Source: Botryllus schlosseri
Taxonomy: Eukaryota
Assembly (NCBI GenBank): GCA_051294905.1
Contig: CM119379.1
Location: 19,964,001 to 20,028,000 of the forward strand
Reading direction: 5' to 3'
Length of the DNA: 64,000 nt
Shown here: positions 36,751 to 64,000 of the stretch, one piece after another
How positions within the stretch are numbered: the first letter of the stretch is position 1
Layout: each line of letters opens with the position of its first letter
Notes under the pieces: model-generated
Seen by the model: only the letters and a program-made list of their open reading frames with translations
Told to the model about the DNA's origin: nothing
The model's database searches: none
Program-made: the position numbers and the translations under genes

Positions 36751-39736
36751 TTAGGTAAATCCACAGCACAAACCAACCAAGCAGGAAGCAACCGGTGATA
36801 TAAAAAGCAGGCATATCAAAAGAGTATAAGAAAAAAATGTAATCATCTCGACGCCAATACGTGACGATGAATAGGACCCGTCGTACGAAATCATCAAAGA
36901 CACAAACACCGAATATGTCAACGTAAAAAGTAAAACACAGAATCTTAATAGTATTGCCCGATATTCTAAGTACGACAGAGATATCTGGCCGTAAGGGTTA
37001 TAAGGCTGCGCCAATCTGTGAGTTATAATGGAAGACGACTTGCTGGTACTCAAAATCATACTTTGTACGTCCTCGGGTATGGTGATCCTGATTTTCTGTT
37101 TCGAAATGGGATCAACGCAATATCTTTGCAAACGCCTGGCCCCACTTTCCTCATCCACATTGCGACGAGAATTACTGTTGGCCGGAAAGTTTTGATAAAT
37201 AACGTTGACTTTTAGGTCGTCTCCGATAGCTTCCAGATTGGAGGACGGTCTTACAACTTTTCCTTCACTTTTCGATGGAGACAGGGAATGGAACACTCGG
37301 TTCTGAAAAAGATGAGGAAGGAATTTTGTAGGAAATCCGACATCATCGATTTTAAAGCGGAAAACACTGTATTCACGAGATATCAGCAAGGAATTAGCCC
37401 TCATTGGTACTATAGTAAAAGTAGAAGTAACGTTGTAAATTTCTACTCAAGTAGAAGTAGGGATTTCCGAGTAAATATAAAGTATTCTAGGCCCAGTTTT
37501 GCTTAAAAAACTGATAAATGTCAGTTGGAAGTAGCATAAAATCGTGATCATTTGGGTGAGTAGCACAAGTATGCAAAATCTACTTGGAGTACTTTCAATG
37601 GTACAAGTATTTCGTTACTGACCACCTTTGGATTTGGACGACAAAAACAGAATCCAAATCCATGCTAATATCAACCGTAGACAGCAATACGCCTATTTTT
37701 CAGCGGGGCTGACGGAATGCGTTGACTCCAAATCATCCCAACACTGAAGCACAGCGCACTGGTGATTACTGTTCTCCTCAAAATTTATTGTGCTCTCTTT
37801 AAATAGAATGGTTATCACAAGATACCTACAAGTCTGGCGACCAAACGCAACCTGTAACAACGCACTGCTACTCTTTCGAAGCGCCCAAGTAGATTTTCAT
37901 ACTTGATCATTGCACAACTTCCTCAAGTTGTGATTTTGAACATCTTCCACTTCTACTCGACAGTTTTCTAGACAAAACTAGGCCTAGAATAATTTTTCTC
38001 TACAAAATTGCTACTTCCACGTCTAGTTTAGTCCCAATCATGTCTAATTGTTCACCTCTGTTGGCTACTAACACCACTAGCTGAGCACCACGAATGTGTC
38101 AACATGACACTGCGATATTATATCCACAACGCATACCTTCTCATCAAATTCTTGCAAGAACAATGAAGATGGTATCCTCGTCACTGTGGTTTCCCTGATT
38201 ACGTGGGTGGGAAATATAGTGCTCTCTCCCAGCTCCCCGCGAAAGTGAATTTCATCGGTCCCAATAGCTTTATCTGATTTATTATCACGATTGGCATCGC
38301 CCGCGGGACCCCCCGGTTCCGGCATATCAGTCTTCCTCTGGTACGGCACCGTGTTTTTGACACAACGACAAACCGAGAGAAAAGCCATCAGCCACAGATG
38401 AAGAGCAACCAGCACGGGGTGAGTCCCTTGCCAGTAGCTGAAAGGATCTTCCATGACGCGTTTCCATTTTCCGGCCCACCGTTCCAAAAGCATTATTCCG
38501 ACCGCAGATATCAGCGTAGTGACGAGGAACATGATTGCTTTCGTCGCCGATATGTAGCTTCCTAATAAATTTCGTACAAGCCCCGTGTCTTCGGATACAA
38601 AATAAATATCGGGATCTTCCATGCCATGATACAGAACGTCGACGTAGAAGCTGTTGGCCACAACAAAGCAGAACACACACATTTTCTCAAACCGAGAGAA
38701 ATTAGAAGTGATAGGCTGAGTGACGTTGCTCTTCGAAAATAAGCACAGCCACGGTATGCGACTCATGAGCATCGCCAGTCTATCGCGATATTTCGAAAGC
38801 CTTTTCATCACGAAAGATTGCCTTCTCGGCTCCAGACACAAAGTTTTAGGCACCGCGTGCTGAAGTAACGCACCGCATGGCTTAAATCTCATCCATCTAT
38901 TTAGGACGGATTTTATGGAAGACGCACTTCTCCAACATAGCCTTTGACCCGTCGATGGATTTTTAACATCCACCTCACTGATGACCATAAGATCTCGAGC
39001 CGAATCCTGTCCAAAGGTAGAGTTACTCTGGCTTTTTTGCGTGGCAACATCATCCGTCCTTTGTGCATCTCCCGAACAATGATCGCAAGCTATCTCTTCA
39101 GCGTTTATGACATCATTGAAGTCTTTTTTCAGTGTGTTGCTAACAGCGACCATTTGAATTTTTGTTATGACGGCAGTGTTCATCGGTAAGTGTAATCCGA
39201 CCGTATCGGTGAAACCAGGCCTTAAAAACAAATGGAGATAATATAGTATACCATTCCCACCTGCAATGATGATGTACCTAAGCAGTCCTTTACAGGAATG
39301 GCGAACCCACACCCAAGGTTCGTCACTGTTATCATTTTCCGTGACGATATGAAACAGAAGGTCGACATCGGATAGCTTTCTTTTCCATGCAGTCTTAATG
39401 TTCACTTGCAAGGAGGACTTTTCACTCTCCTGCTTTTCATCAGAAGAAATGAATACAATGTATCTCTGAACACGCAAGATACATCATCAGTACTTGAAAA
39501 AGACAGTGCCACAATGTTATCATACTTTCCACCTGTCCTTCACGTCTAGAATATAAGCTTGATACAGCAAGCAACCCAAAACAGCATACAATGCGATAAT
39601 AAACCCTGGTATTTCAAACGATATCATATTGCTGCTTTGACTGTATACACACTGAATTGGTGCGCCGTATACGGAAAAGCGGTACACGATAGGCTGTATC
39701 TTGAGTATGGTTTGTGAGATACGCAATCGTATATAC
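36751..39736 (-). CDS. Polycystin-1-like TM1, divergent PLAT and TM2-5 region of the giant gene
   Basis: TM1 IPGFIIALYAVLGCLLYQAYILDVKD. PLAT begins RYIVFISS and includes VISEVDVKNPSTGQ. PWLCLFSKS...NFSRFEKMCVFCFVV...VLYHG corresponds to the PKD1L HLWxSVFxRP...FTRVQR motif. The last exon has two TM helices and then a stop. Confidence 0.78.
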
Positions 39737-42700: not shown

Positions 42701-45700
42701 CAAGAAATAACCTGGAGCTGGTTGTGGTATAAAAATCGCTATAGGATCAGAAACTTCAAAAGCGAGTCTAGTTTGGTAGATGGATTTGGAGAAGTTCATT
42801 TAGCAGTTTGGGATGATAGGTTTAAACCAAAAATTCACAACTTTCGAAACTTCATCATTGACATGACTTGATGTACAATAGCTAATAATGCAACGGCCAT
42901 TTACTGATAAAAAGTCAATGCAAATCTCAAAACTAATAATGAAATTTTTATGTGTATACATGCAGCCAAATGGAGTACTGCTATTGGCATGTATTACTGG
43001 TATTGGCTGGTAGAACAATAACATAACAATTTTGATCACGGCTCATCTTACTTTCACATCTAGCGACCGAAATGTCATCACTCCACGTTCCGTTTTCCAA
43101 GCAAATAGCAGACATATATCCAACGTCAACATCCATCATCAGATAGCCGTGGGCGCAGAATGATTTCGCTTCATTCATGTAATAAAAATGTTGCGATGTT
43201 CCAATCCACACTCCACCGGTGATGTATCCATGGCTTGGAGGCAATGGCCGCATGCATTTGATCTCTATTTAAACATACCGGGATTCAATTCTCAGACAAC
43301 CTCAAGCCAGTTTGAAGTACCAACATTAAACTGTACAATCTCTCCTATTTGAAGAGACTATCAGAGGTAAAGAATTTCAATATGCAATTGAATAATATAT
43401 TCTTATATCTCTTATGCGGGGCGAGAACGGGCTTTGAGCACTGAGCAGTCACGGATAAAACATTTTATAAAGTGAGTGGAAAATTATGCGGGACAATCAA
43501 CGATTAAATATACCGGTGGATTGGACATTTCGATTGAACGTATTTTCCATGTTCTGAATTCACTCGATCTGCTAACCCCAATTTAACAAACCTGCGGAAA
43601 AGCGTCTTGTATGTTGACCAAAAGGACTCAAAACAAAACCAAAAGTAGGATTATTTCAGGCGACGTTCATTAAGCTGGCTAAGGCATTGCAGGATTATAA
43701 TATGATAATAGAACACAGAATTGGGATTCGATTCGCACCCACTGAACATACCCTATTGAAATTAATTTAAGATACCAGAATTAGATACTAATTATATAAT
43801 ACAATCAAGGGATTATTACTCCTGAGTCCTTGGAAATTATAATATTTGTCTACGGTTATGGAAATGAAGTATCCAATTTTGATGAATTTCCGCCCAGGGC
43901 AATTCCATCCTTCTTGGGAGCCACTACAAATATAGCTTCAACAGATACGGAAGTGTGCAATAGTAACAACGTAAAGACTAATGGCTAACAATGCCTACTA
44001 TCTCACTTTTACATTTGATATCGATCGGGTTCGGTTGCCAATTCACTCGGTCGACACATTTCGATTGTACGAACCGCATGAAACCGTTCAAAACCAAGCC
44101 TGCGTTACCTGTGTCGACCACGTAACCTAAAAAGACATTCTTTTAGAACAACGCCAACTGCCAACATAAAACAGCGCACCTTCAAGGCATGTGTAATTTG
44201 CTACCGCTCCAACAGTGTACTTCCCGACACTTTGTACGGCATTATCCACCAGCTGTGGCGGTCCACAATCATATACTGTCAATAAAAATCAGATAGTAAC
44301 ACGAGATAGAACAGAAAATTCTATATCATCTACGAACGTGAGCAAACCAAGTCTTTCGGGTCAGGGTGCCACTGTTGATCGTCCGAGCATTGAATTGTTT
44401 CCGTGTCCCACTCTGGATCCTTCTTTTGATCAAAATAATGACCGTCGATACAAGTCACGATCACCTCATCTTCATATTTATATTCAATTCCCGTAAGAGT
44501 GCTGTTATCTGGCTGATAAGGCTTGCGGCATTGTATTCCTGGAAGGGTAAAGGGCTTGTGTGAGCGATGCAGAGATGCAGAGCGGATTTGTGGTACGAGG
44601 AACTTGAATAACATATTTGTCGCAATAACATTTAGTCTTCGAAGCATTGATAGAAATATAGCAAATCAAGCAGATATAGAGTATGTAATTCAAAGATGCT
44701 GTGTGAATTAGGTCATGGCGAGAGCATTCAAATGTCTATACAACCCGAGCCTAGTGATGAAAGACACACAACAAATAGATATGGTCAGACCATTCATGGA
44801 ATATCTTTTACAATATTCAGATGGCACCAAACCTCCTTCTGGCGACATCAGCTGGGCTTAAGGCAAGATTTTGATGAATAAAAATAACAATTGATCCAAA
44901 AATATCGAGGTGAAAAAAAAAGAATGAGACTCGGAAAAAAACAATGAAATTGTTAGCTTATCAATATATTGTGTAGCACAATCTGGATTCCGTAACATGT
45001 GTTGACCAATTGATGAAACATATGAATGCATGAATGAGAAAGGGTTGACTTATTAAACCTTGACTATCCTGAGAAGGTTTGCAATAACTAAGAACAGAAA
45101 GAACTTTCCATATTGCAACTTTACTTACTTTGACAATTCAGAACCGAGACGCTCATATCCCATTCTTTATTGGCCTGGCATTTGGTAGATATCGACGTCG
45201 AAAATTCGCCAGAGTGCGGGTTTTGAAATATGAAGCCTTTGTCGCACGTGTAAGTGACAATGCTCTCGAACCGAAAATCATTTCCGTGCCTCACGCCGTT
45301 TGGTATGACGAGAGGCAACGAAGGGCAATGCATCACTGAGGAAATTAAAGAACATTTTTGAAGTTGACTCGACTTGAGCTTTACAAACATCTCGCAATCC
45401 AAGCCTTGGACATTGAAAAAATGCGCTATCAATGATACCATGATACATTTTCAGCAGGTCTGTATGAAAAAGACAATCCACACACTGCCAGTGGATAAAA
45501 CAACCGTTGTTGATTCGGGCCATGTAGGTAACATTGGGCCAGAGCCCTGTCGGAAACCGACATGTTTATTTCAGTCTGTATGAAAACCAGTACAAGTTAT
45601 ATATGTTTGCTTAATCGTGTGGTCAGTGCACCAGACATATTTTTCAAAATCTAAACCAACTAGCCAACCTGGATTTTGGTCTCGCAGCTATTCGGATAAG

Positions 45701-48700
45701 GCGATCTATCATTGGCATAAGAAGTTACAATTTTTTCGTTGAGGTGAATCTCCAAGTCCAGAATTGAGCCCGTGAATTGGTCACAATATGCACTTTGCGA
45801 TTTTGGAATAGGTATCGAGCCAATAACAGTAGCAAATTGGGAGGTAGTTGGTCAGATTAACTACCCACATCCCGAGCAATATGATGTATCCTAGTCCATT
45901 TGGACAATCTTAGCGAAAACTGAGAACAGCATATCATATACAAGATCTATGCAAGACCAATTAAACCTTATTCCTGCAAAATTTTAAGTGGGCACAAATC
46001 CAAAACGTAATTGAAAATATATATAAGCTATATGTCGTGATTGGTCCTCTACAGACAGCGCAAAGGAAAATTAGGCATTGGAGACGCATACCGACACAGG
46101 CGAATATCGTCGGGTTAGGTGTCCACGTTTTATATTTGTCACACTTCACTTGCAGCACACCGCTACCAAAGGAATAATGCGTGGGATGGATTCTGTATCC
46201 CGGCTTGCAAGTATAAGTGGCGACAGCATGTAGCGAGGTAGTGGCATTGACCAATTCCAAAGTAGTTCCCTCGATGTCGTCTGGTATGCCACAATCGACA
46301 CCTGTACCAAATATGATGGTATTTATTCAGAATAAGTTCCAGGGTTACGAGGGATACCTTCACAAAGTATCTGACTCGGGACAGTCGTCCAATCGCCATC
46401 TATTTTGCACGTAACCGAATAATATCCGTTGGATGGAGCGATGCTGAATTGATAGCCCATTTCACAGTCAAACATGGCTGTTTCACCAACTAAGTACTCT
46501 TTCTTGTTCGAAGGTGATGACGCAACTTTACTGTTGCGAGGTAATTCGGGATCAATGCAAGTCACGGCTAAATAGGAATACCAACAGCATCAGGTATGAG
46601 AAATATTTTGCATAAACTATCCATTCAATTACATAAAATATTAAAATTGTTAATCATATCCATTACAAAATAGTCGGATGATACCAGGTTAAACCAAATT
46701 CAGGCAAATTAATTTTCTCCCATAATTAATACTAGGCGTTGGAAAAATCTGAAAATCTAAGAGCAAATCCATCAACACTATTTAGTTGGATTGCAAACTC
46801 ACCAAAATGCCACCAACACAATGCGATGATTAATTTGATATTAAATTTTATAGTTGCAGCTTGTAGTGGTTTCATAGTTTGGAATGGAGTGTGAAAAATA
46901 GATAGCGGATTGATTAAAGACTCAATGACGCTTGAACGCTACGAGTTAGATGCTGATCTGTACCCTAATTACAATACCATACCGTTGATGACAAACAAAA
47001 TCATTACTGAACTTACGAACACAAGCGGGTACAGACGATGGGTCGGGATCCCAATTACCAGACTCGTCGCACACCGCTTCAACAAAATCAAGGTCTCTAC
47101 CCATCCAGTAACCTGCCAGAGACGCAACATACATGCGGACAAATCAAGGCATTTAGAAAATCAACCGCAGTACCGGCGGGGCATTTGAACTTGATCGTGC
47201 TTTTGTATTGGCTTCCCGCGCCGGCTTCGATCGAATGAGAAGACGTCGTTATAGCTTGCGGATCTTGGCAAGTCGCGACTTCATACAATGCATGTATAAA
47301 AATCAAAGACACAAAGTAATATCTCATTAAATTCATTACCTTGACAGTCCACGATAGCGTTATCGGAAACCCAGTATCCAGCTTCACCACATCTAGCGAC
47401 CTGCTCTTGTAGCTTCGAGGTTCCGTCGTATGCATAATGCCCAACGAGGCATCTGTACATCAGCACTGATGTATACACAGATCCGTTACCGTGCAATTTC
47501 GTATTTTCCGGCTGTCTGTCGAGTCCGCAGACTATTGCTACACGAATAAGTGAAAATTAGACGACGAAAACTTGTGAGAACCTACAATCCGCGGTCACAT
47601 ACGATTACACTGAATGGCTCGGGGATCTGGATTCCAAGTCGCGAGCTTTGTACACTGAATTGTGGTAGAGACAACTCCTTCTTTTATGACAAACCCTTTT
47701 TCGCATGTAATCATGACAATGGTGTCCAAGGTATAGTCGCTCGACACTTTGGAGAGAAATGCGTTTGCGGGAACAGAAGGAGGCTGACACAGAACAGCTG
47801 GAAAAGAGTTCACAATTATAAATAAAAGTGATGTCGTCTAGCTATAGAACATAGGCTACTATAAATCAATTTAGCTCACCGTATTGGCAAGAATACAGAT
47901 GTACATGAGCTCATGCTATGAGGCTTTACATGTATCAAACGTCGCTATGAATTTCAAAATTCAATTATTTACCAACATTTAATCAATTCTTCTTGCAATA
48001 CCCAAGAGTCGCATAGTTTAGGTTAACATGCGGTCCAGATCAATTTATGATAAGCAGTCAACATGGATATCGATAAGAAAAACCAAGGACAGATGGTACA
48101 ATATTTTTGATTTCTCAAACTTCAAATCTTTACTACATCTGCGTTTATAACAGGCTCACACCCAATAGCAGGATTAGCCTAGATAAGTTTTTTTATTTTT
48201 ATTCAGATCGACAGAACCGGGATTGTAGTTTCTGTGAAGTAGGAACGCAGTCTGACCTCACTGAATCCTCTCAGAATTCTATCGCAACCTTTTAATTAAG
48301 ATGGTAGGGATCATAGAGTAGCATATTCAATTCAGGGCTGTATTAGTATTAGAGTGGAACAGACCGTACCATTCACATTGCTTGACTCACTTTCACATTT
48401 GATGAGTTTCGGATCGGGACGCCACTGTGTATCCGCACTGCACACAATATCTGCACTAGTCTCACTAGCCGGTGAGTTTGATGTCTAGAAACACAGAGAA
48501 CGCTACAGATCAAGTTTCTGGAGATCGAGTCTTGTCACATTACCCGAAGCGTCGAGGGAAGCGATATCAAAAATGACGGGTCACACTGTACGACTTTGAG
48601 AGCGCCAAATAAATTGCTGTTCCCAACGGAATACGTTGCATTTGCGACATCCTCGGGTTCGCCACAATCCACTTCTGCAAAAAATGAGTTTAAATGATGG

Positions 48701-54700: not shown

Positions 54701-57700
54701 GCTGTACACAAAGGACAGGGGCACTTTTTCAGTAAAATTATCACAGTTTGGATGAAATATGTATAAAATAATCAAGTTTTAATTCCATCGTGAATGAGCA
54801 GGCCAATTCTTATACATTTTAACAATATATTCATAATATTGTATTTGTTTCTAAGATGTCATAATTAGTAGCATGCAGTGTAATTATTAGAGCTTCTTGG
54901 AGGTACAGAATTCGATTACCCCCGACGAGTGTCAGTCGAAATATTCGGGTTCATTTCAATAGGAATATACTATCCAATTGCATATTGTAATTATAGTTGG
55001 ATTTTTGAAATTCCTCATATGCTGATGATTGCCAATAAAAAGTGTCCGGTTGAAAAGCTTCAGTTGTAATATATTTACATTATGAATACATTATGAAATG
55101 CATAGGGAAGTTCTGCACCCCCCTTAAAATTGCACCACACATAACTGATTTAAAAGACATCTGCTTCAACATGCCACAAGGTGATATACAGTGCAGGACA
55201 CGGACACATGTTAGAGAAATATGTCCGATATAAACAAGGTTACACTCAGAATCGGACGGTAAAAAGTCTCTAACATAAATGGATGAATAAACCCACCTGA
55301 CAATATCTTGATAGCCGATGAAACTCTCGGTACTGTAAGTGGCATGTTCCAAATCACCGGGATCTCCACATTCAACAGCTGGATTGATATGAACAAGTTA
55401 TAAAATCAGTAATCAGTAGGGCAATTTTTTGACATATCAAAAATTGTCAAAATTTTATCGAAATTGTATCGTTAGGTCAAAAAATTGTAAGAATCATTTA
55501 CAAAGTAATTTTTTTTGCAACCGGCATTTCGCTTGTATGATAGGTGTTTGCACTGTTGGTGAACTTATCATTTGACATTTTACAGATTGTAGCCTTCTTT
55601 ATAGGCCTACCGTTGTAGACGGCCAATTATACGCTCATTGCGAATCATATACGGCCAAAAGAAAGAAATAGGTTGACCCGGTGTTATGCTCAACATACCG
55701 CAACATCCAAACTGAGGCGAGACTGTGTGGGCATTGGTTGTTATATCAAGAAGCGCATGATGAAAAACTGTGATGTAGACAGCATTGTCAGAATGAAGCA
55801 ACACGTTGTGTCGCCAGCAGTGTACGCACAACTTCAGTGTCGCCAGCTAACAACTGCTGCTGTTGAACGTTCTTTCTCCATTCTTGGCAATCCACTTGGG
55901 TAAGGACAGACACTTTCTACCCGAGAATGTAGGAAAGTATCTTTTGTCGTACCGCAATAAATTTTAGTTATTTTTACCATAATGCGTGATGTAAATACTG
56001 GAATTTTTTATAGGTCCAGATTTCGTTAAAATAAAGTTTTTGGATGTAAAAACTTGTCAGATTTCAAGTCAAAAAAGTTTATTGAGGCCAAAATATTTCG
56101 TAAGGGCAGACAGCTCCAACCAGAAATGAGGATAAGTAGTACAATTCTAACATTATGTGCGAAAAACACCGAATTTATATAAATAGGGGAAAATTTTTGT
56201 CAAAATTAGCTTTTTAAGGCAAATTCAAAATTTTGATTTCTTAGGTCACAATTTTCCGTTTTTTAGGTAACAAAATATCGCCCTAGCAATCAGATATTTC
56301 TAAAATGCTCATAGACTCACGAAGACAGGTAAATTCAGAAGGATCCGGGTCCCAAATGGCTTCCGAGGTACAAGTAGACTTTGCCTCGTATTTGCCTTTC
56401 GAAATCCAGTGCCCTATAAAGAGATCAAAGTGATTGTGCGGAAATAAAAATTCAATTCCACTGATTTTGTATTCAATTTCCACACAACAGCAGAGGTTGT
56501 CATCGTTTCTACTCTAGGTAGAAGTAACACCGTGAAATTGTCTCAATTACAAGTAGAAGTAGCTATTTCAAAACATATCAAAAGTATTTCGAGTATACGT
56601 ATAAAAATGAAGATATGAAATATACTCAAGTCTTAAAAACGAAAAATGACACTAGAAATCGGTGCAATTTTAGAAAACACTCATGCACTGCGATAAATTG
56701 GCTCTTTGGTCTTGTTTCCATGGCAATTTCACCAATAAAAACGATGCAAGCATGTCTCAAAACGACTTTCCACAAAATTCACTGTGTAAAACTTAATTAA
56801 CTTTGCCTAAAAACGCCAAGTAGGAGTGGGGAATTCTACAAATTTACTCAAAAGAAATATAAATTTTGAATACCCCTAAAACAACTACAGCATACGTACC
56901 GAGGCTACACTTGTACGTAATGGTTTGCAAGTAAGTCCATATCAGTCCGATCGTCTCAGCGTATTGAACGGGCGGGGGCGGCGGACAAATGATACCTGAT
57001 GTAGGCAAATCATAAGTCAGATAGAACGTGGAATCGGTCAAAAAATCTTACTAACCGACGCATTCTATTGCATCTAGTGACGGGAACCAATTTCCAGTCT
57101 CGTCACAAGTCACTTGCAATTCCAGTTTGCCGGGAGACACTAATTTTCCTGGACCGCACGAGTATACGGCTTTTGCACCAAATTCCGTGTTTGGAGATAC
57201 TGCAATGGATCATATATTTCTAATATTTGTTGACTTTGATATGAATATATCCGCCTTACTTAACGTGTGCAGGGTATTTGGCAGGTCAGGCAGAGGCGGG
57301 CACATCTGCACCGTGCATTTTATATCTTGTGGCGGCGGGGACCAATACCCAAATTTTGTGCAGTACGAGGACACCGACAAGAAACCATCTGCGGGGAACA
57401 TTAAATATTATCCGCAGTTACTCAAGTTTTGAAAATATATCACCTTTAGCTGAGCAGATTGAGTTGGCGTCTATGCTCCCTTGTATGGTCCAGCTGCCAA
57501 GCACGTCTGTGTAGCTATCGCCTGCGGTTACGTGAACGTTATTGGTGTTCTGTTGTGTTCTGGAATTGTAAAACAGTTTACGGTAGATTGAAAACTGTAC
57601 TGTACATTAGGGGTCTTCAAAAAATGACTTTTTTTTTTCTCAAATGGTACTGGCTACATGATAAAATTGTTAGGTTACCTAATTTAAGCCTACACACCCA

Positions 57701-60700
57701 ATTTAGTTCAATTCCAGCCAGTAGCCGCATTGCTACAGGAGAACAAAATTTTCTGTTCACCCTATGAAAGTGTCAGGTTGTCTATAGAAACGATGTCCAC
57801 CAAATTTGGTTCGATTCCAACCAGTGGAAGAGGAGTTATTGCCGTCGAAAAATTTGGATTATCAATAAAATAGTATTTACGGTGACCAACTCTTTGATTA
57901 TTTATTATAGGTGTGCACACTGTAAATACTATTTTATTCAAATACAAATTTTTTGACGGCAATAACTCCGCTTCCACTGGTTGGAATTGAGCCAAATTTG
58001 GTGAACATCGTTTCTATAGACAACCTAACACTTTCATGGGGTGAACAGAAAATTTTCAAATTTTTGGTAATTTATTTTTAGATATTAAAAATTAAATAGA
58101 AACTTTTTCTCCTATAGCAATGTGGATACTGGTTAGAATTGAACCCAATTTGGTGTGTAGGCTTAAATTAGGTAACCTAACAATTTTATCAAGTAGCCAG
58201 TACAATTTGAGAAAAAAGTCATTTTCGAAAGCCACTACTGTATGACGTACGTACATGCTATGATTATACATAAATTTTATAAATTTCGTCATAAATCACA
58301 TTTTGCAATGGAAATATATCTTGATTTGGCTCGAATCTGGTGAATTTTGAAGTCGCCTGAATTGTAAGATATATGCTTTGCTTTTGGTCTTTATAAGTTT
58401 CTTCAATGAAAACATGACACGGGTATCAGCCAACGGAAAAGCCATTGTCGAATAACAGTTTGACTTGGAAGCAATGGAAGCTAGTTCCTAATTACACAGA
58501 CATACACCGCCACCACACACCAAAGCATAACAACACAATTGACAGATGAGATGAGCTAAAAATGTAAAGAAACAGTTCCAATATATAATACCTGATGTAG
58601 ATAGGTGGACTAGCATCTTTAATTGCCAGTAGCAGCTTGTTTCCAGACATAGTCGGACACGTCCACAATTGCCTATAAAATCCAGAATTAGTATATTCAG
58701 AGACAGCGCAATTAAAAGCAAACCTTTCATCGGTAATCTTGCAAGGCTTCAAATACGCGACCGCCGATTCACCATCACTCATTCGAGCATCTCTTCTATT
58801 GATCGCCAGACACATCTGACGTTAAAAACACTTTTTATAACAAGCACAAAGAGTAAGTAGCAGCGTAGGAACAAACCTGTGTTCCAACATTTCGTATTAG
58901 ATATTCATCTTCCCACATCCATGTATATTTCTGATCTCTCCACAAGCATTCCTCAACTAGAACGAGCTTATTGCCATCCGCAGCCAGACATCCTTCGTCG
59001 TTTGGATGGTAGATTTGAAAGCTATTGCGAATTTCATAACCTGAACGACAAAAACTTCTAGTCGGAAGAGAAACAGAAGATTGGAAGTACTCAATAAGCT
59101 CTAAACTGCAGTAGAAGATAAATCAAATTGAAAAATTCGTCTATCGAGTGTTGTTACGAATACGCGTAGTTTCTAAACAGATATTGTGTTTGTGATTCTA
59201 CCAAAATTGAAAACAATGATATTACCGGTTTCATGGCACATGTATTGTAATTCGTGCGCGAACAGGAAACTAGAGCTGTTGCCTGCATTCAGATAACTGC
59301 CGTCACCACTTGGCTCTGGATCAGGACAAGTTATGTCTGAAATAGAACATGCAACATTTGACGGCTATCAAACATCACCATTGACGTTAAATTTCCATAC
59401 TTTGACACCATGCAACAGTTGGATCTGGCGACCATTCGCCTTTATCGTTGCACTGAATCGGGGTTCGAAGTTCGACGAGAGAAAAGCCGAGGTCACAAAT
59501 TATCAGGATTTCCGCGAGATATCTGCAATATATCTCATAATCACTCGTATCAAATCAGTAGATACTCAGCTCACCTGTAACTCGTGACGACTATTCTGGC
59601 ATTTGGTTGCTCCGGTGGTTTTGGACAAATCAAAGCTGGGCAAAACACAATGTAATTGGTTGAGAATTCTCATGAAATAGGATTGACATAGTGCTGTGAT
59701 GGAATGATATAAAAACTTGAAGTCAGATTCAATATGACCCGGCTAGCAATAAACTAGGTACACTGCATATAACCAAGGCATGCTTAAACCAGGGTTGTAA
59801 TGACTCGACTCAAGATATTTTGTGACTCGGCATGACTCGAGTCAACTTATCAAATGTGTTAAATGACTCCACTCGAGTCATTGTGCATGACTCGAGACTA
59901 GGAAGGCCAAGACAGACATTTCAGTGTAATTTCGAAGAATAGCAAAGTCACCACATTATTTGTATTTCGTCTATCAGTCCTGATACTTGGAAAATAGGGC
60001 TGTGTTCGGACTGAGGAAAATAATGATGTTATGAATGCGAGACATTCTATGTCACTCGAGCAGAGTTGAAAAAGTGGGCTGAACCGCGTTGAACTCAAAA
60101 CTCAGCAGTGAACACAATGACTTGGACTCGAGTAACGAGTCTCTACTCACTGACTTGCTACTTGGTTACAACCCTGGTGTGATCTACCTCTAGAGATGGT
60201 CGAATTAGCCAACATTGCACTCATACAAGCGGAAGCAGCCGTTTCCAAAACATAGAAAACCATTTCCAGTAGAAGTAAAAAAGGTCTGAAACTATTCAAA
60301 GAAGCTTTATCAAGTAAATTTGGTTGAGGTGTCCAACACTTTTAGCAATACATCTGCGAAAAGCTACTTTTGAAATTACAAGATGCAGATTTTCAACGGC
60401 GCGAACTGACCGATCAAACTAGAAATCGATAAATTTTCAAAATTATGCTATGCTACCACGATTCAGCATCTATTTCGTGTGTTTGCTTTGATAATTTCCC
60501 TCAGAAAAGAGATGCAAACCAATCAAAAAACTAATTTTTACTTTACATAAATCATAGGTAAGTGGTGAATGTAGGTAAATCCCTCTCGAATACTCCAAAA
60601 AAGTAGTAATTCCTTAGTGACCACCCCTGCTTATGTACGTCCAATAATAATCTACTTTTCCAATCTAAAATTCGGCTCTGGCTAAAGTCATCACAAAACC

Positions 60701-63700
60701 TATAAATGCAAGATGACAAGCATGAGCTTACCTTCGCAAATGACATTCTCCAAAGGATCAGGCTCCCACGTTGCATTCACGCTGCATACAAATCCGGTCA
60801 CATTGCCACGACCCTTAGCCACCCAATACCCGGGCAAGCACTGATACATCACTTCCGAGAGATACGTGAAATTAGATCCGACATATTCGGCGTAAGGTAC
60901 CCGAGGAGGATAGGAACACGTGGTAGCTGGTCAAGACAGGCTAATTACAAGAAGTACCCGATGAAAAAGTTGATTTCAACTTACTTAGACACTCAAAATT
61001 ATTCGGGTCAGGACTCCACAGCTGACTCTCATTACAACGACTTTTACGGGTAAAGTCCATCGGCTGGCGATCCATTGACGTTCCTACATCGCATCTGTAT
61101 AATACCACATCTCCATACTTGAAACCTACTGGTGGTGTTGCAGTCAACATGGAACCAGACGCGATAGATGGCGGATTAGGACAGGAGAGTTCTAAAAACA
61201 ATGTTTTTAAGATGAGATGTGGCAAGATAAACACCTATCAATCATACAGGGCATGATAGCTCTAAAAGCAATGTGTTTATTGAGACGGTTTGCGACCAAT
61301 TTCAACACTCAAATCTAAACAATACAAAGGGAATTGACAAGCCTCATCAAAAACTTCACATATCGATTGTAGTTGGATTTATGATGTCATTTTGAAACTC
61401 AGAAGAAACAAATTTAACAGTGACTGAGAGAGAGAGGAAGAGTTTATCTATTTTTTAACCATGAGATACACAAGGTAATATTAATGACCATGCAAGTCAT
61501 GAAATGATAATTGACATTAGATAAGAGAGGCTACATGACTGAAGTCTCCCATCCATTTCTACCATCAGTTAATTGGGAAAATTAAACGATTAAGGAAAAT
61601 AATATACTGTACTTTCACAAAGCCATGAAGATGAATTTCTGTCCCAGGCGATTAAAGTATCATTTGCCGAGTTGACGCAGTTGATTTTATCTTCCAACAT
61701 ATCTGGATCGCCGTTTATTCCATATCCCGTGTCGCAATGAATGAGAACCCCACGTCCGTCTCTTCTCCAGTCCTCGTAGATTGTGTATGCGTTTGCGGGA
61801 ACCGGTGGTGGTGAACACGTGTCATTCAATTCTTAATATGATATTGTGCTTTCATAAAGTCAATGCTAATACGTTTCGAATGGTATCATACTTTGCTGAC
61901 ATGCATAGTAGTGAGGGGTTAAGCAGCTTCTTTCTTCGAGACCTATTTTATCGTCTCCCAATACAGAATATGTGGCACACCACGGAGCGTACTGGACGCT
62001 TTTGATGATATTTTTGTTGGCGTTGCCCCTGTTTCAGATGTGTTTCGTTACAGACTATGGGAACACAAAATACACAGTTCAAAATAACTGATGAAGATTG
62101 ACAATGTGCAATATAAGAAGGGTGAATACGTTAGGTGGATAATTATTGTCATGGTATTGTAAATGAAAAATCAAGGGCATCAGCCAGGGTTGTAATGACT
62201 CAAGTCACGACTTTCTAATGACTCAAGTCATCTTCTCGAAATATGGAAATGACTCTATTCACACAGATTGACTCGACTTGGACTCGAGTCATTGCGCATG
62301 ACTCGGACCAAGTCATATGACTAGAGTCTCAGACGGCCAAGACCGACTATGCATGGTTATTACGAAGAATAGTAAAGTAACCACACCGTTGGTATTTCGC
62401 CTATTGGTACTGGTACTTGAAAATGTGACCAGAAACCGTTGAAAGTGAGGAAATTAGTATATTTTAAATGAAAATCATTCGAGACTCAAGTCATAATACC
62501 ATGACTCGGACTCGACGCTCTGCAGTGAACTAAGATTGACTCGACTTGACTCGAGTCAAAACTTTAAAAGTAAGATTGACTTGTGACTCGGAGCCTTGCG
62601 ACTTGGTTACAACCCTGGCATCAGCTCTGTTCCACCAACTCATCGAGTCACACTTGCCTGAAGCACCACACTACTTTGGCATTAGCATTTGAAGTATTGC
62701 ATTGGAACATTCCATCCGCATTAATTGTTTGAGCACACGCGTCGTCTCGGAAATTCATAATTCCCATTTGGCCTCCGTCAAGAGTAGCTCCACAAAAACA
62801 ACCGTCCTGCATTCCGGTTTTTATCGCAGCTTTCAACTCGATTCCCCTCGCAATACGCCCGCCTGCAAGAGATGTCTTCTTCATAAAACACAGCCATCGA
62901 ACATAAAACCCAAACGCCTCACCGTGCAAGTGACACGCAGCTGCCATTTCCTCATTATCAGCAAACACCTGATCGTCGGGCAGTTCAAAGAACTCGCAGC
63001 TATCCCCGGTTGCGGACATTGGTCTGTACCCAGCTTTTACGACAGCAAATACGTTTTCTGAGATGTAAAATAAAGAAATGACTGCAGATTCCTTGAAATG
63101 GCGAATGGTCAACAAGTTAATGTATTAATATTAACGAAGCAGTTTCCAACAGAACGTAGGTATTGGCTCTGGATTAGCTTTAAATATCTTAACAAGTTCC
63201 ACACTAATGCATAAACAAATAAATGCTAACCTGATGGTCTGTGCCACTCATCACAAAGATACCTAGTAGTTGTAGTTTGGTACATGGACGAGCAATTGTA
63301 TTCATAGTATTTCCCGGCAAGATGTGAACGATCATAAGGTTCAATCTGCAGGCGGGCAGTATAAGGGTGATGATTTGGATTTGTACAACTGCTGAAAGCT
63401 ACATACCTTATCGAAAAGAATGCTATAGGAATATTTTCGAAGCTTGATATGATACGGGTTTTTGGAACGACACGTCCAATGCTGCAATTCATCGGTGTAG
63501 TTGCAATTAAGCACTCTTAATCCGGGTATGATATCTGAACAGACATACTGGTTTGGATACCTTTACGAAAAACAAAAATTAACCTATATGCACAGCAATA
63601 TCAATCACAGATTGGACAAGACCCTTAGATATCTACCTTGCAGAATAAAAATCTCATTTACCTGACTGTGTATCCCCTTCCACTTGGAACGGTGCGGTCA

Positions 63701-63959
63701 AGCACAGTCCGGTTTGCACATGCATGAGATGATAGGTCGAAACCCACACCCATTCTAACCCACCAAGATCATTATATTCACAAGATTTGCTGTGAAGCAA
63801 TTATTGAATTTGATGTCGAACGGTTGATATTTGAATGAGCATACCTTCTCGCATAGTGATGTTTAGCATATGCAGATCTTACGTTCCCGTACGAATGCTT
63901 TTCGGGATCACCATACAAGCATCGACGTTTGTACGGGAGTACACTCATTTCGTCATCAT
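36751..63959 (-). CDS. Giant lectin-sushi-discoidin polycystin-1-like membrane receptor (5' end beyond the window)
   Basis: 52 phase-consistent exons (9764 nt, ~3,250 aa): 63959-63845, 63789-63662, 63534-63407, 63345-63231, 63057-62658, 62028-61892, 61831-61613, 61191-60985, 60926-60732, 59635-59575, 59522-59401, 59336-59226, 59040-58877, 58815-58724, 58672-58592, 57559-57444, 57388-57260, 57199-57056, 56995-56900, 56413-56321, 55378-55297, 54701-54592, 54526-54446, 54382-54260, 54168-53977, 53353-53150, 52014-51808, 51752-51564, 50963-50781, 49879-49688, 49628-49440, 49137-48937, 48674-48544, 48484-48391, 47797-47603, 47537-47340, 47278-47174, 47112-47017, 46567-46358, 46301-46092, 45335-45129, 44538-44338, 43264-43052, 42663-42475, 41707-41471, 41418-41231, 41115-40957, 40896-40786, 39920-39799, 39736-39526, 39465-38137, 37302-36751. 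Two donors must be GC. The single-gene model is inferred without RNA data. Confidence 0.72.
39650..41115 (-). CDS. F5/8 type C (discoidin)-like domain of the giant gene
   Basis: MFDGDPYTYWRP...EWTVEWDLDNDYAVASLRL...TFAIDMSLNGDGW...TRYIRLRI...YRFSVYG across four exons. Confidence 0.75.
41471..61831 (-). CDS. Array of ~28 sushi/CCP domains of the giant gene
   Basis: Repeated CxxP...N...Y.C..G(Y/H)W...C...G.W.P.P...C modules, mostly one per phase-1/phase-1 exon of 183-237 nt. Confidence 0.92.
49898..50321. mobile_element. hAT MITE (CAGGGTTGTAA family)
   Basis: Ends caaggttgtaatgactc / ggttacaaccctg; TSD catttttg / cgtttttg. Confidence 0.8.
51115..51154 (+). ncRNA. Minimal hammerhead-ribozyme-like motif (Penelope/retrozyme type), copy 1
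   Basis: accc CTGACGA gtgttagcc GAAA atat tt gggt: core motifs, stem I accc/gggt and palindromic AAATATTT. Part of a ~100-200 bp repeat. Confidence 0.5.
52129..52166 (+). ncRNA. Hammerhead-like motif, copy 2 (GAAA mutated to GATA)
   Basis: taacc CTGACGA gtgtcagcc GATA atat tc gggta, with the same downstream repeat (gaagttctgtacct). Confidence 0.4.
52242..53111. mobile_element. Tc1/pogo-type MITE, inverted relative of 3039-4026
   Basis: TIRs ccgtaattttccaagtata / tatacatgtaaaattactg with TA flanks; internal ~100-bp duplication at 52417/52517. Confidence 0.8.
54914..54952 (+). ncRNA. Hammerhead-like motif, copy 3 (CTGA mutated to CCGA)
   Basis: gattaccc CCGACGA gtgtcagtc GAAA tat tc gggtt, preceded by an inverted copy of the repeat tail (cttcttggaggtacagaa). 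Confidence 0.4.
55417..56285 (+). mobile_element. hAT deletion derivative with a transposase C-terminal remnant
   Basis: Termini TAGGGC / GCCCTA; TSD gtaatcag / gcaatcag. Contains a frameshifted LTTAAVERSFSILG...KDRHFLPENVGKY, the hAT dimerisation-type ERxFS motif. Confidence 0.82.
57444..59040 (-). CDS. Mannose-receptor CysR-type ricin B domain inserted within sushi domain 5
   Basis: FQIYHPNDEGCLAADG...WMWEDEYLIRNVGTQMCLAI...YLKPCKITDERQLWTC...LLAIK...SWTIQGS...ICS parallels MRC1 FLIYNEDHKRC...RWVSESQIMSVAFKLCLGV...QKWECKNDTLLGIK...RWKIYGTTDNLCS. Confidence 0.78.
57609..58238. mobile_element. Palindromic MITE with ~220-bp inverted arms
   Basis: 57620-57830 is the reverse complement of 57965-58230 apart from one insert; no clear TSD. 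Confidence 0.7.
59790..60176. mobile_element. hAT MITE (CAGGGTTGTAA family)
   Basis: TIRs cagggttgtaa / ttacaaccctg; internal sequence shared with the 49.9 and 62.2 kb copies. Confidence 0.78.
62185..62617. mobile_element. hAT MITE (CAGGGTTGTAA family)
   Basis: TIRs as above; perfect 8-bp TSD gcatcagc (62177-62184, 62618-62625). Confidence 0.9.
62658..63057 (-). CDS. Cys-rich WSC-like domain exon of the giant gene
   Basis: SCEF...EMAAACHLHG...WLC...GCFCG...DDACAQ...FQC...VVWCFR resembles WSC cysteine spacing; divergent. Confidence 0.45.
63231..63959 (-). CDS. N-terminal mannose-receptor CysR-type ricin B domain of the giant gene
   Basis: KRRCLYG...KSCEYNDLGGLEWVWVSTYHLMHVQTGLCLTA...LRVLNCNYTDELQHWTC...HIKLR...RYLCDE across four exons. 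Confidence 0.7.
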
Positions 63960-64000
63960 CTGATTCCAAGTTAGCGATGAGTATTCCATCTAATTACAGA

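Follow-up and report, generated by a model that had tools for sequence, protein, structure and literature searches.

A predicted mannose-receptor-type CysR domain nested within a sushi module of a giant ascidian surface protein

Within a 64,000-nucleotide stretch of the Botryllus schlosseri genome (contig CM119379.1, positions 19,964,001 to 20,028,000; hereafter the window, to which all unqualified positions refer), six minus-strand exons spanning 59336-57260 form a single open frame of 230 amino acids, with canonical AG and GT dinucleotides at every border, in which one sushi or complement control protein (CCP) module appears to be interrupted by a complete cysteine-rich (CysR) domain of the mannose receptor type. 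The unit is laid out as a first sushi half (C1..C2-x-x-G), a block of 151 residues and a second sushi half (C3..W..C4), and belongs to an extended minus-strand series of sushi modules that begins near 63 kb in the window and ends near 41 kb. We conclude that this nested architecture is real and conserved and that its exon structure is informative, domain insertion itself being already known; and we consider it very probable that the six exons represent a true nested-domain unit in a very large cell-surface mosaic protein of ascidian type.

The coding sequence of the unit is distributed as follows. Exon E1 (59336-59226; 111 nucleotides, phase 1-1) encodes the first half of the host sushi, I-T-C1-P ... 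Y-M-C2-H-E-T-G, and ends after base 1 of the Gly codon; the intron that follows (59041-59225, phase 1) thus lies inside the Gly codon of C2-x-x-G. E2 (59040-58877; 164 nucleotides, phase 1-0) supplies five residues of a sushi strand, YEIRN, and then lobe I of the CysR domain, bearing two Cys and a Q-K-Y-T-W motif. E3 (58815-58724; 92 nucleotides, phase 0-2) encodes the first part of lobe II, again with two Cys; E4 (58672-58592; 81 nucleotides, phase 2-2) encodes the end of lobe II and the start of lobe III and carries a Q-L-W-T-C motif; and E5 (57559-57444; 116 nucleotides, phase 2-1) encodes lobe III, including a conserved Trp and, 12 residues after it, the sixth CysR Cys. After a phase-1 intron of only 55 nucleotides at the CysR-to-sushi junction (57389-57443), E6 (57388-57260; 129 nucleotides, phase 1-1) provides the second host half, G-F-L-S-V-S-S-Y-C3 ... 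G-Y-W ... C4, followed by 18 residues, including C1, of the next sushi, and is therefore a hybrid exon; the succeeding intron (57259-57200, 60 nucleotides) falls between C1 and C2 of that next module, and exon borders at 57200-57388 do not follow module borders. Exons E2 to E5 together make a symmetric phase 1-1 block of 453 nucleotides, or 151 residues, with six cysteines and introns of the same phase on both sides. Both end exons had been placed exactly in an initial annotation made from the sequence, which did not mention the 18 residues of the next sushi, and its description of an insert bounded by phase-1 introns holds for this copy and equally for the paralogue described below.

Two further sequences carry the same unit. 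A paralogue in the same 495-Mb genome (L002, C9:20152048-20155212, in coordinates that place the window at C9:19964001-20028000) lies approximately 125 kb away on the same strand and has the same six exons in the same phases, of 111/167/95/81/116/129 nucleotides and with GT-AG borders throughout, one acceptor having been placed 24 nucleotides inside the apparent exon. E4 and E5 measure 81 and 116 nucleotides in both gene copies, E3 of the paralogue lies at 1439-1345 of L002, and the sushi units neighboring its nested unit occur in the same order as in the window. The one full-length relative found, by an exhaustive search with the 54-residue E2 peptide, is the product of Styela clava LOC120345301 (XP_039270628.1, 4991 residues; isoform X2, XP_077971250.1, 7864 residues), in which the nested unit occupies residues 2257-2472 and is contained in both RefSeq isoforms. 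Between its residues 1659 (position 63990) and 4973 (position 36769) this protein and the window are colinear, at 35-60% identity, and because the colinearity has this extent the window can be taken to hold most of an ascidian ortholog or co-ortholog.

Over the unit, identity is 52% between window and Styela, 41% between window and paralogue, and 43% between paralogue and Styela; the four sushi Cys, the Trp and the six CysR Cys are kept in all three sequences. By segment, the window and Styela sequences are 62% identical in the first sushi half, share 4 of the 5 residues of YEIRN, and are 45% identical in the core of the insert and 71% in the second sushi half, so that the sushi halves are the most conserved parts of the unit and the insert core is conserved at about the level of the gene as a whole. 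E4 is 58% identical to its Styela counterpart and 46% identical to that of the paralogue. Since the paralogue is more distant from both other sequences than these are from one another, the nested unit most likely predates, as judged from sequence divergence, both the gene duplication and the split from the Styela lineage.

Evidence that the two host halves belong to one module came first from their residues. In window, paralogue and Styela alike, the halves together hold four Cys, a Trp between C3 and C4, a Pro after C1, Tyr or Phe at the second position before C2 (Tyr/Phe-x-C2) and a Gly after C2, and when 36 ordinary sushi units, of which 16 were taken from the window and 20 from Styela, are aligned with MAFFT, they divide cleanly across the insert. 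The unit of the Styela protein (residues 2256-2476) was then modeled with AlphaFold2 (AF2), using an alignment that included these 36 ordinary units. Predicted local distance difference test (pLDDT) values for the host halves were 93/85/90/82 over model residues 1-40 and 84/94 over residues 190-210. When the model was compared by VIA-align with 48,161 representative chains, single CCP modules occupied 49 of the 50 best rows (Z 5.1-8.0), in alignments spanning model residues 1 to 221; among them were module 4 of the short consensus repeats (SCR4) of CD46 (Z 7.9, root-mean-square deviation (rmsd) 1.9 A over 58 residues), SCR4 of DAF (62 of 65 residues aligned) and factor H 1hcc (59 of 59). A Z of 7-8 is within the common range according to the notes of the tool, and the weight of the comparison rests on the consistency of the list and on coverage of the full module. 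In the model, then, the halves come together as a single complete CCP module across an interval of 150 residues, and the split sushi closes, as had been proposed for a check of the initial annotation, in a prediction whose alignment had paired the halves beforehand. Two other searches were blind to this arrangement. Neither half alone matched Pfam PF00084 at gathering score, which says little because each half is shorter than 40 residues and the model cannot bridge 150 residues; and Foldseek gave no match in the PDB at E <= 0.001, a null outcome since a sequential local aligner cannot bridge the insert, with weak top rows that were nearly all CCP proteins. The E3 and E5 peptides, which MAFFT misplaced onto the E2 region, were left out of the structure alignments, as were three CysR sequences of the same genome (L004, L006 and L007) and a CysR-like region upstream in the Styela protein, which misaligned onto the sushi halves.

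The insert is, by the features of its sequence, a predicted CysR beta-trefoil of the mannose receptor type. Within the Styela protein the profile PF24562 (CysR_MRC2_N) scores 29.0 bits at residues 2299-2386, against a cut-off of 27, as the sole CysR stretch found there at E <= 0.001, and scores 27.7 bits on the domain cut out from the protein, the match spanning profile positions 3-87 of 133 only; E2 of the window on its own matches positions 3-39 (23.5 bits, E 5e-5). Sequence matches in the PDB were to the N-terminal CysR domains of MRC2 (5AO5, 5E4K) and MRC1 (1DQG, 1FWU), at E 0.03-0.04 and from the first strands, and the ten nearest named clusters in the ESM-Atlas were all beta-trefoil families (top score 0.96). 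Peptides from E3 and E5 aligned repeatedly onto the E2 region, an internal repetition expected of a three-lobed trefoil. The CysR domain of the mannose receptor (Cys-MR) is held by disulfides C16-C30, C55-C72 and C83-C130, the last being particular to this type (PMC2193177). Cysteines of the insert are spaced 14/25/23/11/57, compared with 14/25/17/11/47 in Cys-MR, and thus reproduce the three-disulfide pattern at the level of spacing; a conserved Trp stands 12 residues before the last CysR Cys, as Trp117 does at 13 residues in Cys-MR. The initial proposal of a complete mannose-receptor-type domain, predicted to be a beta-trefoil, between C2 and C3 is supported.

The sulfated-sugar pocket of Cys-MR comprises Asn99, Asn102, loop 111-116, whose backbone makes the sulfate pocket, and Trp117, which stacks on the sugar (PMC2193177). 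The interval of the insert that corresponds to this loop is 10 residues longer, the additional residues falling in part, on alignment by eye, in the loop ahead of the conserved Trp; the specificity of MRC1 for sulfated GalNAc should for this reason not be assumed. The Asn positions do not align reliably. By analogy with the mannose receptor family, we regard the insert as a candidate glycan-binding site in the middle of a CCP rod.

The position of the insert within the host can be read from the exons. At least three ordinary sushi modules of the window are also split by an intron of phase 1 in the Gly codon of C2-x-x-G, at 56414-56899, 47113-47173 and 44127-44179 on the minus strand; the first two of these had been offered as comparisons in the initial annotation and are real, agreeing with the E1-E2 intron in both position and phase. 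The protein-level junction is displaced from this intron. E2 opens with five residues (YEIRN; YELRN in Styela, HELRR in the paralogue) that align with the strand following the Gly in 36 ordinary units, and the next conserved Gly of those units is matched by the G-F that opens E6; the Pfam CysR match begins at the N of YEIRN, and AF2 draws the Styela Y-E-L as a sushi strand. Counting YEIRN, the spacing from C2 to C3 is 17 residues, within the 14-26 of the 36 ordinary units (mode 16); E1 joined to E6 alone would give 12. Five strand residues being encoded in E2, E1 and E6 do not by themselves make a full sushi, and the insertion point in the protein, on these alignments, lies five residues downstream of the old intron. 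None of the three ordinary split units examined has an intron that matches the one between E5 and E6 (57443-57389).

These observations qualify the earlier suggestion of exon shuffling into an intra-domain intron: the 5' intron does occupy a recurrent phase-1 position, but the YEIRN offset, the spacing of 12 and the unmatched 3' intron speak against the simplest form of such an event, and since E1 and E6 are incomplete together, a cassette simply dropped into an intron does not suffice. The nested unit would have arisen once, at or beside an existing phase-1 intron within a sushi. We favor an origin in which a genomic piece carrying CysR exons probably landed about 15 nucleotides inside the exon for the second half, bringing its own downstream intron; that a cassette landed in the intron and had its boundaries changed later is a possibility we favor less.

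Expression of the unit was followed chiefly in a low-depth transcriptome (run X1), whose contigs omit introns that have CT..AC ends, at 56993/57054, 59336/59401 and 59522/59575, and join E1 to the upstream exon at 59401. A contig of 259 nucleotides (depth 4.75) covers E2 exactly at 58877-59038 and is flanked by 50 and 47 further letters. Binned depths in this run were 3.02 (58760-58943), 2.45 (58944-59127) and 3.95 (59128-59311, including a second contig of depth 7.2), and were reproduced to three digits under one placement only, in which the 50 letters fall within 58760-58876 and the other 47 within 59128-59311. Because these placements fall at the start of E3 and the end of E1, respectively, depth arithmetic indicates that E1, E2 and E3 appear to be spliced into one RNA. 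Over E6, an X1 contig has nine unlike letters upstream of the acceptor, and so is spliced there to another exon; it continues into the following 60-nucleotide intron, which has an in-frame stop, and represents either a retained intron or pre-mRNA. Another X1 contig, which skips the comparison intron at 56414-56899, contains at its junction (56408-56413/56899) four letters, ATAC on the plus strand, that fit neither side; these could reflect a polymorphism at the junction in the individual sequenced or a slightly different acceptor. Contigs of run X2 pass straight through small introns (57097-57378 and 59213-59364) and, being unspliced, are not usable as evidence of expression; they probably derive from DNA or from heavily unspliced RNA.

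Several results pull in the other direction from a nested unit and have to be set against the evidence above. Beyond the Styela protein and two short fragments from the Logan collection, no homologues were found by the exhaustive E2 search or by searches in three length ranges, the latter recovering only the Styela protein. The PF24562 score of the Styela protein is barely above its cut-off, and Ricin_B_lectin falls just under its own (27.8 compared with 29). Structural support is uneven: the AF2 model is that of the Styela ortholog and not of the window protein; its insert has pLDDT of 27-47 over residues 90-189, with lobe I at 54-75, and so does not confirm the trefoil fold; and a prediction from the ortholog and exon fragments that omitted the sushi rows was poor throughout (pLDDT 41). 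Closure of the host is, moreover, partly built in, because the alignment already matched the halves to ordinary sushi units. RNA support extends over E1-E2-E3 only, through depth arithmetic, the joint rows for these exons not being among those listed; E4 and E5 have no RNA coverage; and two bulk RNA-seq runs (X7 and X11) had no reads on any exon, from which we conclude that expression is low or restricted.

That structure prediction was steered in this way leaves room for a different arrangement, in which the flanks are two degenerate half-modules that do not pair and the protein runs linearly from half-sushi to lectin to half-sushi. Folding the two halves as separate chains, with no alignments, yielded no verdict on this arrangement (score 0.11 compared with a mark of 0.34). 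We nonetheless find it decidedly unlikely, since each half possesses exactly the Cys pair, Pro, Tyr-x-Cys, Gly and Trp that complement those of the other, the C2-C3 spacing returns to a normal 17 once the insert is removed, these features persist in three sequences of 41-52% overall identity, and the halves are the best conserved parts of the unit between window and Styela.

The thinness of the RNA bears on two other alternatives. With E4 and E5 uncovered and the nine upstream letters of the E6 contig unattributed, E2-E5 might be an optional cassette, the gene making both plain-sushi and lectin-bearing forms; skipping a symmetric phase 1-1 block would indeed preserve the frame. The plain form would be left, however, with 12 residues from C2 to C3 and no strand of the G-Y-x-L type, outside the range of all 36 ordinary units, and one X1 contig appears to link E1-E2-E3, just as both Styela RefSeq isoforms include the unit; an optional cassette therefore seems unlikely. 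The second alternative is an artefact of the gene model, the lectin exons being a small separate gene that occupies a long intron within the sushi gene, or a dead insertion. Among the joint rows listed none shows E1-E2 directly, and the Styela models are automatic predictions; against this, E2 begins in phase at an acceptor and lacks a start codon, E5 runs to a donor without meeting a stop, all frames are open in two gene copies only 41% identical, the E2 contig extends, by depth arithmetic, into E1 on one side and E3 on the other, and the host sushi is incomplete unless the first five residues of E2 are included. An artefact of this kind is in our estimation scarcely credible. The proposal that the parts lie in the same mRNA is supported for E1-E2-E3, which appear to be joined on the depth evidence.

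In a nested unit, the host chain would leave the CCP fold after the strand following C2 (C2-x-x-G-Y-E-I-R-N), traverse a complete CysR beta-trefoil of approximately 146 residues and three disulfides, and re-enter at G-F-...-C3...W...C4. A beta-trefoil brings its own two ends together, and in the CysR type the third disulfide pins the C-terminal tail; with the ends thus adjacent and the tail held, the host could still form its C1-C3 and C2-C4 framework. The CCP rod would then continue uninterrupted, bearing an additional lectin-like knob that would bind glycan. Sideways presentation of a putative lectin from the stalk, as the initial annotation supposed, is reasonable where an elongated module is interrupted at one of its turns.

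Insertion of one domain into another is frequent among enzymes and known in a few extracellular proteins, of which the laminin L4-in-LE arrangement is an example, and small disulfide-held modules such as CCP are usually seen as indivisible beads joined end to end. That a conserved CCP houses an entire lectin domain suggests that such a bead can double as a socket, and offers a natural design for attaching a binding domain laterally to a rigid CCP stalk whose length stays the same. The exon record of the unit remains unusually readable, in the recurrent phase-1 intron, the symmetric 1-1 block and the offset of five residues, which speaks against the textbook cassette model. With the unit, a giant, lineage-restricted ascidian surface protein gains a candidate glycan-binding site. 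A more speculative extension, which we hold to be doubtful, is that the phase-1 intron splitting the C2-x-x-G Gly codon serves in ascidians as a reusable docking point for grafting lectin modules onto CCP rods. Were it true, it would describe a general route to multivalent glycan receptors with CCP modules as hosts, a role undescribed for this fold, and the nested unit would be its first documented case.

The gene in which the unit resides can be described more fully from its Styela relative. Pfam matches on the Styela protein comprise Lectin_C, many Sushi repeats, F5/8 type C, a weak match to Xlink and one stretch of CysR_MRC2_N, giving an architecture of N-terminal Cys repeats, C-type lectin domains, a Link-like region, approximately 30 sushi/CCP modules and a discoidin domain; a putative transmembrane segment and cytoplasmic part can also be read from the sequence of the gene product. 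The Xlink match (P0003, residues 1864-1943; 19.8 bits) fits the Link-like region. Residues 1 to approximately 3500 of isoform X2 (P0007) form a long array of Cys repeats of about 90 residues each, with the pattern C-F-G-x-x-Y-P...Y-Y-G-P-H...C-L-E-T-I-W, and the two isoforms differ by approximately 2900 residues of this N-terminal array; a Pfam scan of isoform X1 (P0003) assigned no family to its N-terminal Cys repeat. A CysR-like region upstream in the same gene (62648-63959; approximately residues 1702-1826 in Styela) gave no Pfam match in Styela at E <= 0.001, and as its exon breaks also differ, it was set aside as donor of the insert.

Two Logan fragments from sample SRR25569784 (P0005 and P0004; contigs of 6311 and 3255 nucleotides) resemble E2 of the paralogue, to which they are nearest; they contain two different open reading frames (ORFs) like the first CysR exon, one of them with a Sushi ORF upstream. 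The sample may come from a further related organism that carries two or more copies of this kind. Other matches from the E2 search (P0001, P0002 and P0006) were treated as spurious, Pfam having detected neither sushi nor CysR/ricin domains in P0001 and P0002.

Repeated elements occupy several introns of the gene. The 1032-nucleotide intron between E4 and E5 (57560-58591) contains a high-copy inverted-repeat element (57633-58217) in which one inverted repeat is nested within another, the outer arms (57633-57746 and 58104-58217) being 114 nucleotides long and 90% identical and the inner arms (57745-57860 and 57941-58056) 116 nucleotides and 93% identical. Summed contig depth over this element in X1 and X2 runs into thousands, by which we class it as a high-copy foldback resembling a miniature inverted-repeat transposable element (MITE). 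Two further intronic stretches, 59864-60231 and 56000-56183, have X1 and X2 contig depths of hundreds to thousands together with bulk RNA-seq reads, and are probably other dispersed repeats.

Among known systems, the insert is likened most directly to the CysR domains of MRC1, MRC2/Endo180, PLA2R1 and LY75 (1DQG/1DQO, 1FWU, 5AO5, 5E4K), with which its sequence suggests a shared beta-trefoil form of three W-centered lobes. Relative to Cys-MR, three of the five Cys intervals are equal (14, 25 and 11), the cysteines for the tail-pinning third disulfide are included, and the sugar-stacking Trp117 is matched by a conserved Trp that precedes the last Cys by 12-13 residues. Two loops of the insert exceed those of Cys-MR, one by 6 residues and the other by 10. 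Context differs: CysR domains of the mannose receptor family are N-terminal, followed by fibronectin type II (FNII) and C-type lectin domains, whereas the insert is internal, within another domain, and is encoded by four exons. A further comparison is provided by a second locus of the same genome (L004, G000:C15:7392868-7396089), where a single extracellular protein combines sushi and CysR domains. There, two complete CysR/ricin-type domains (PF24562, 31.5 and 29.5 bits) stand between complete sushi units and are not nested, and the coding sequence is an intron-free open frame of at least 3085 residues, unlike the six exons of the nested unit. The E2 search missed this locus, and its sequence is therefore not closely similar; its existence nevertheless shows that sushi and CysR domains also combine in the ordinary tandem manner in this genome.

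The host shares the four-Cys, one-Trp framework of complement-regulator CCP modules, and its model superposes on CCP modules of CD46, DAF, factor H, C1s and MASP with rmsd of 1.7-3.2 A over 55-70 residues. Introns within such modules have a precedent in human C4BP alpha, whose SCR2 is reported to be split by an intron within the module (PMC2118859); we liken this to the intron-split sushi described here at the level of the module. Full-text literature searches found no described CCP module hosting another domain and no published description of Styela LOC120345301. A 2026 survey reports domain insertion in 20% of multidomain proteins, and its main text makes no mention of sushi, CCP, ricin or trefoil (PMC13114784).

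The nearest described analogue known to us is the L4-in-LE arrangement of laminin, in which a globular domain resembling a carbohydrate-binding module (CBM) lies between two Cys of a small disulfide-held rod module; the host there is LE and the guest a CBM35-like sandwich, whereas here the host is a CCP module and the guest a predicted beta-trefoil. To our knowledge the laminin L4 inserts are ancient and universal in animals, unlike the nested unit, which has so far been found only in ascidian sequences of stolidobranch type. L4 is inserted between Cys3 and Cys4 of the eight-Cys LE domain, and the LE array is thought to be undisturbed by its presence (PMC5338690).

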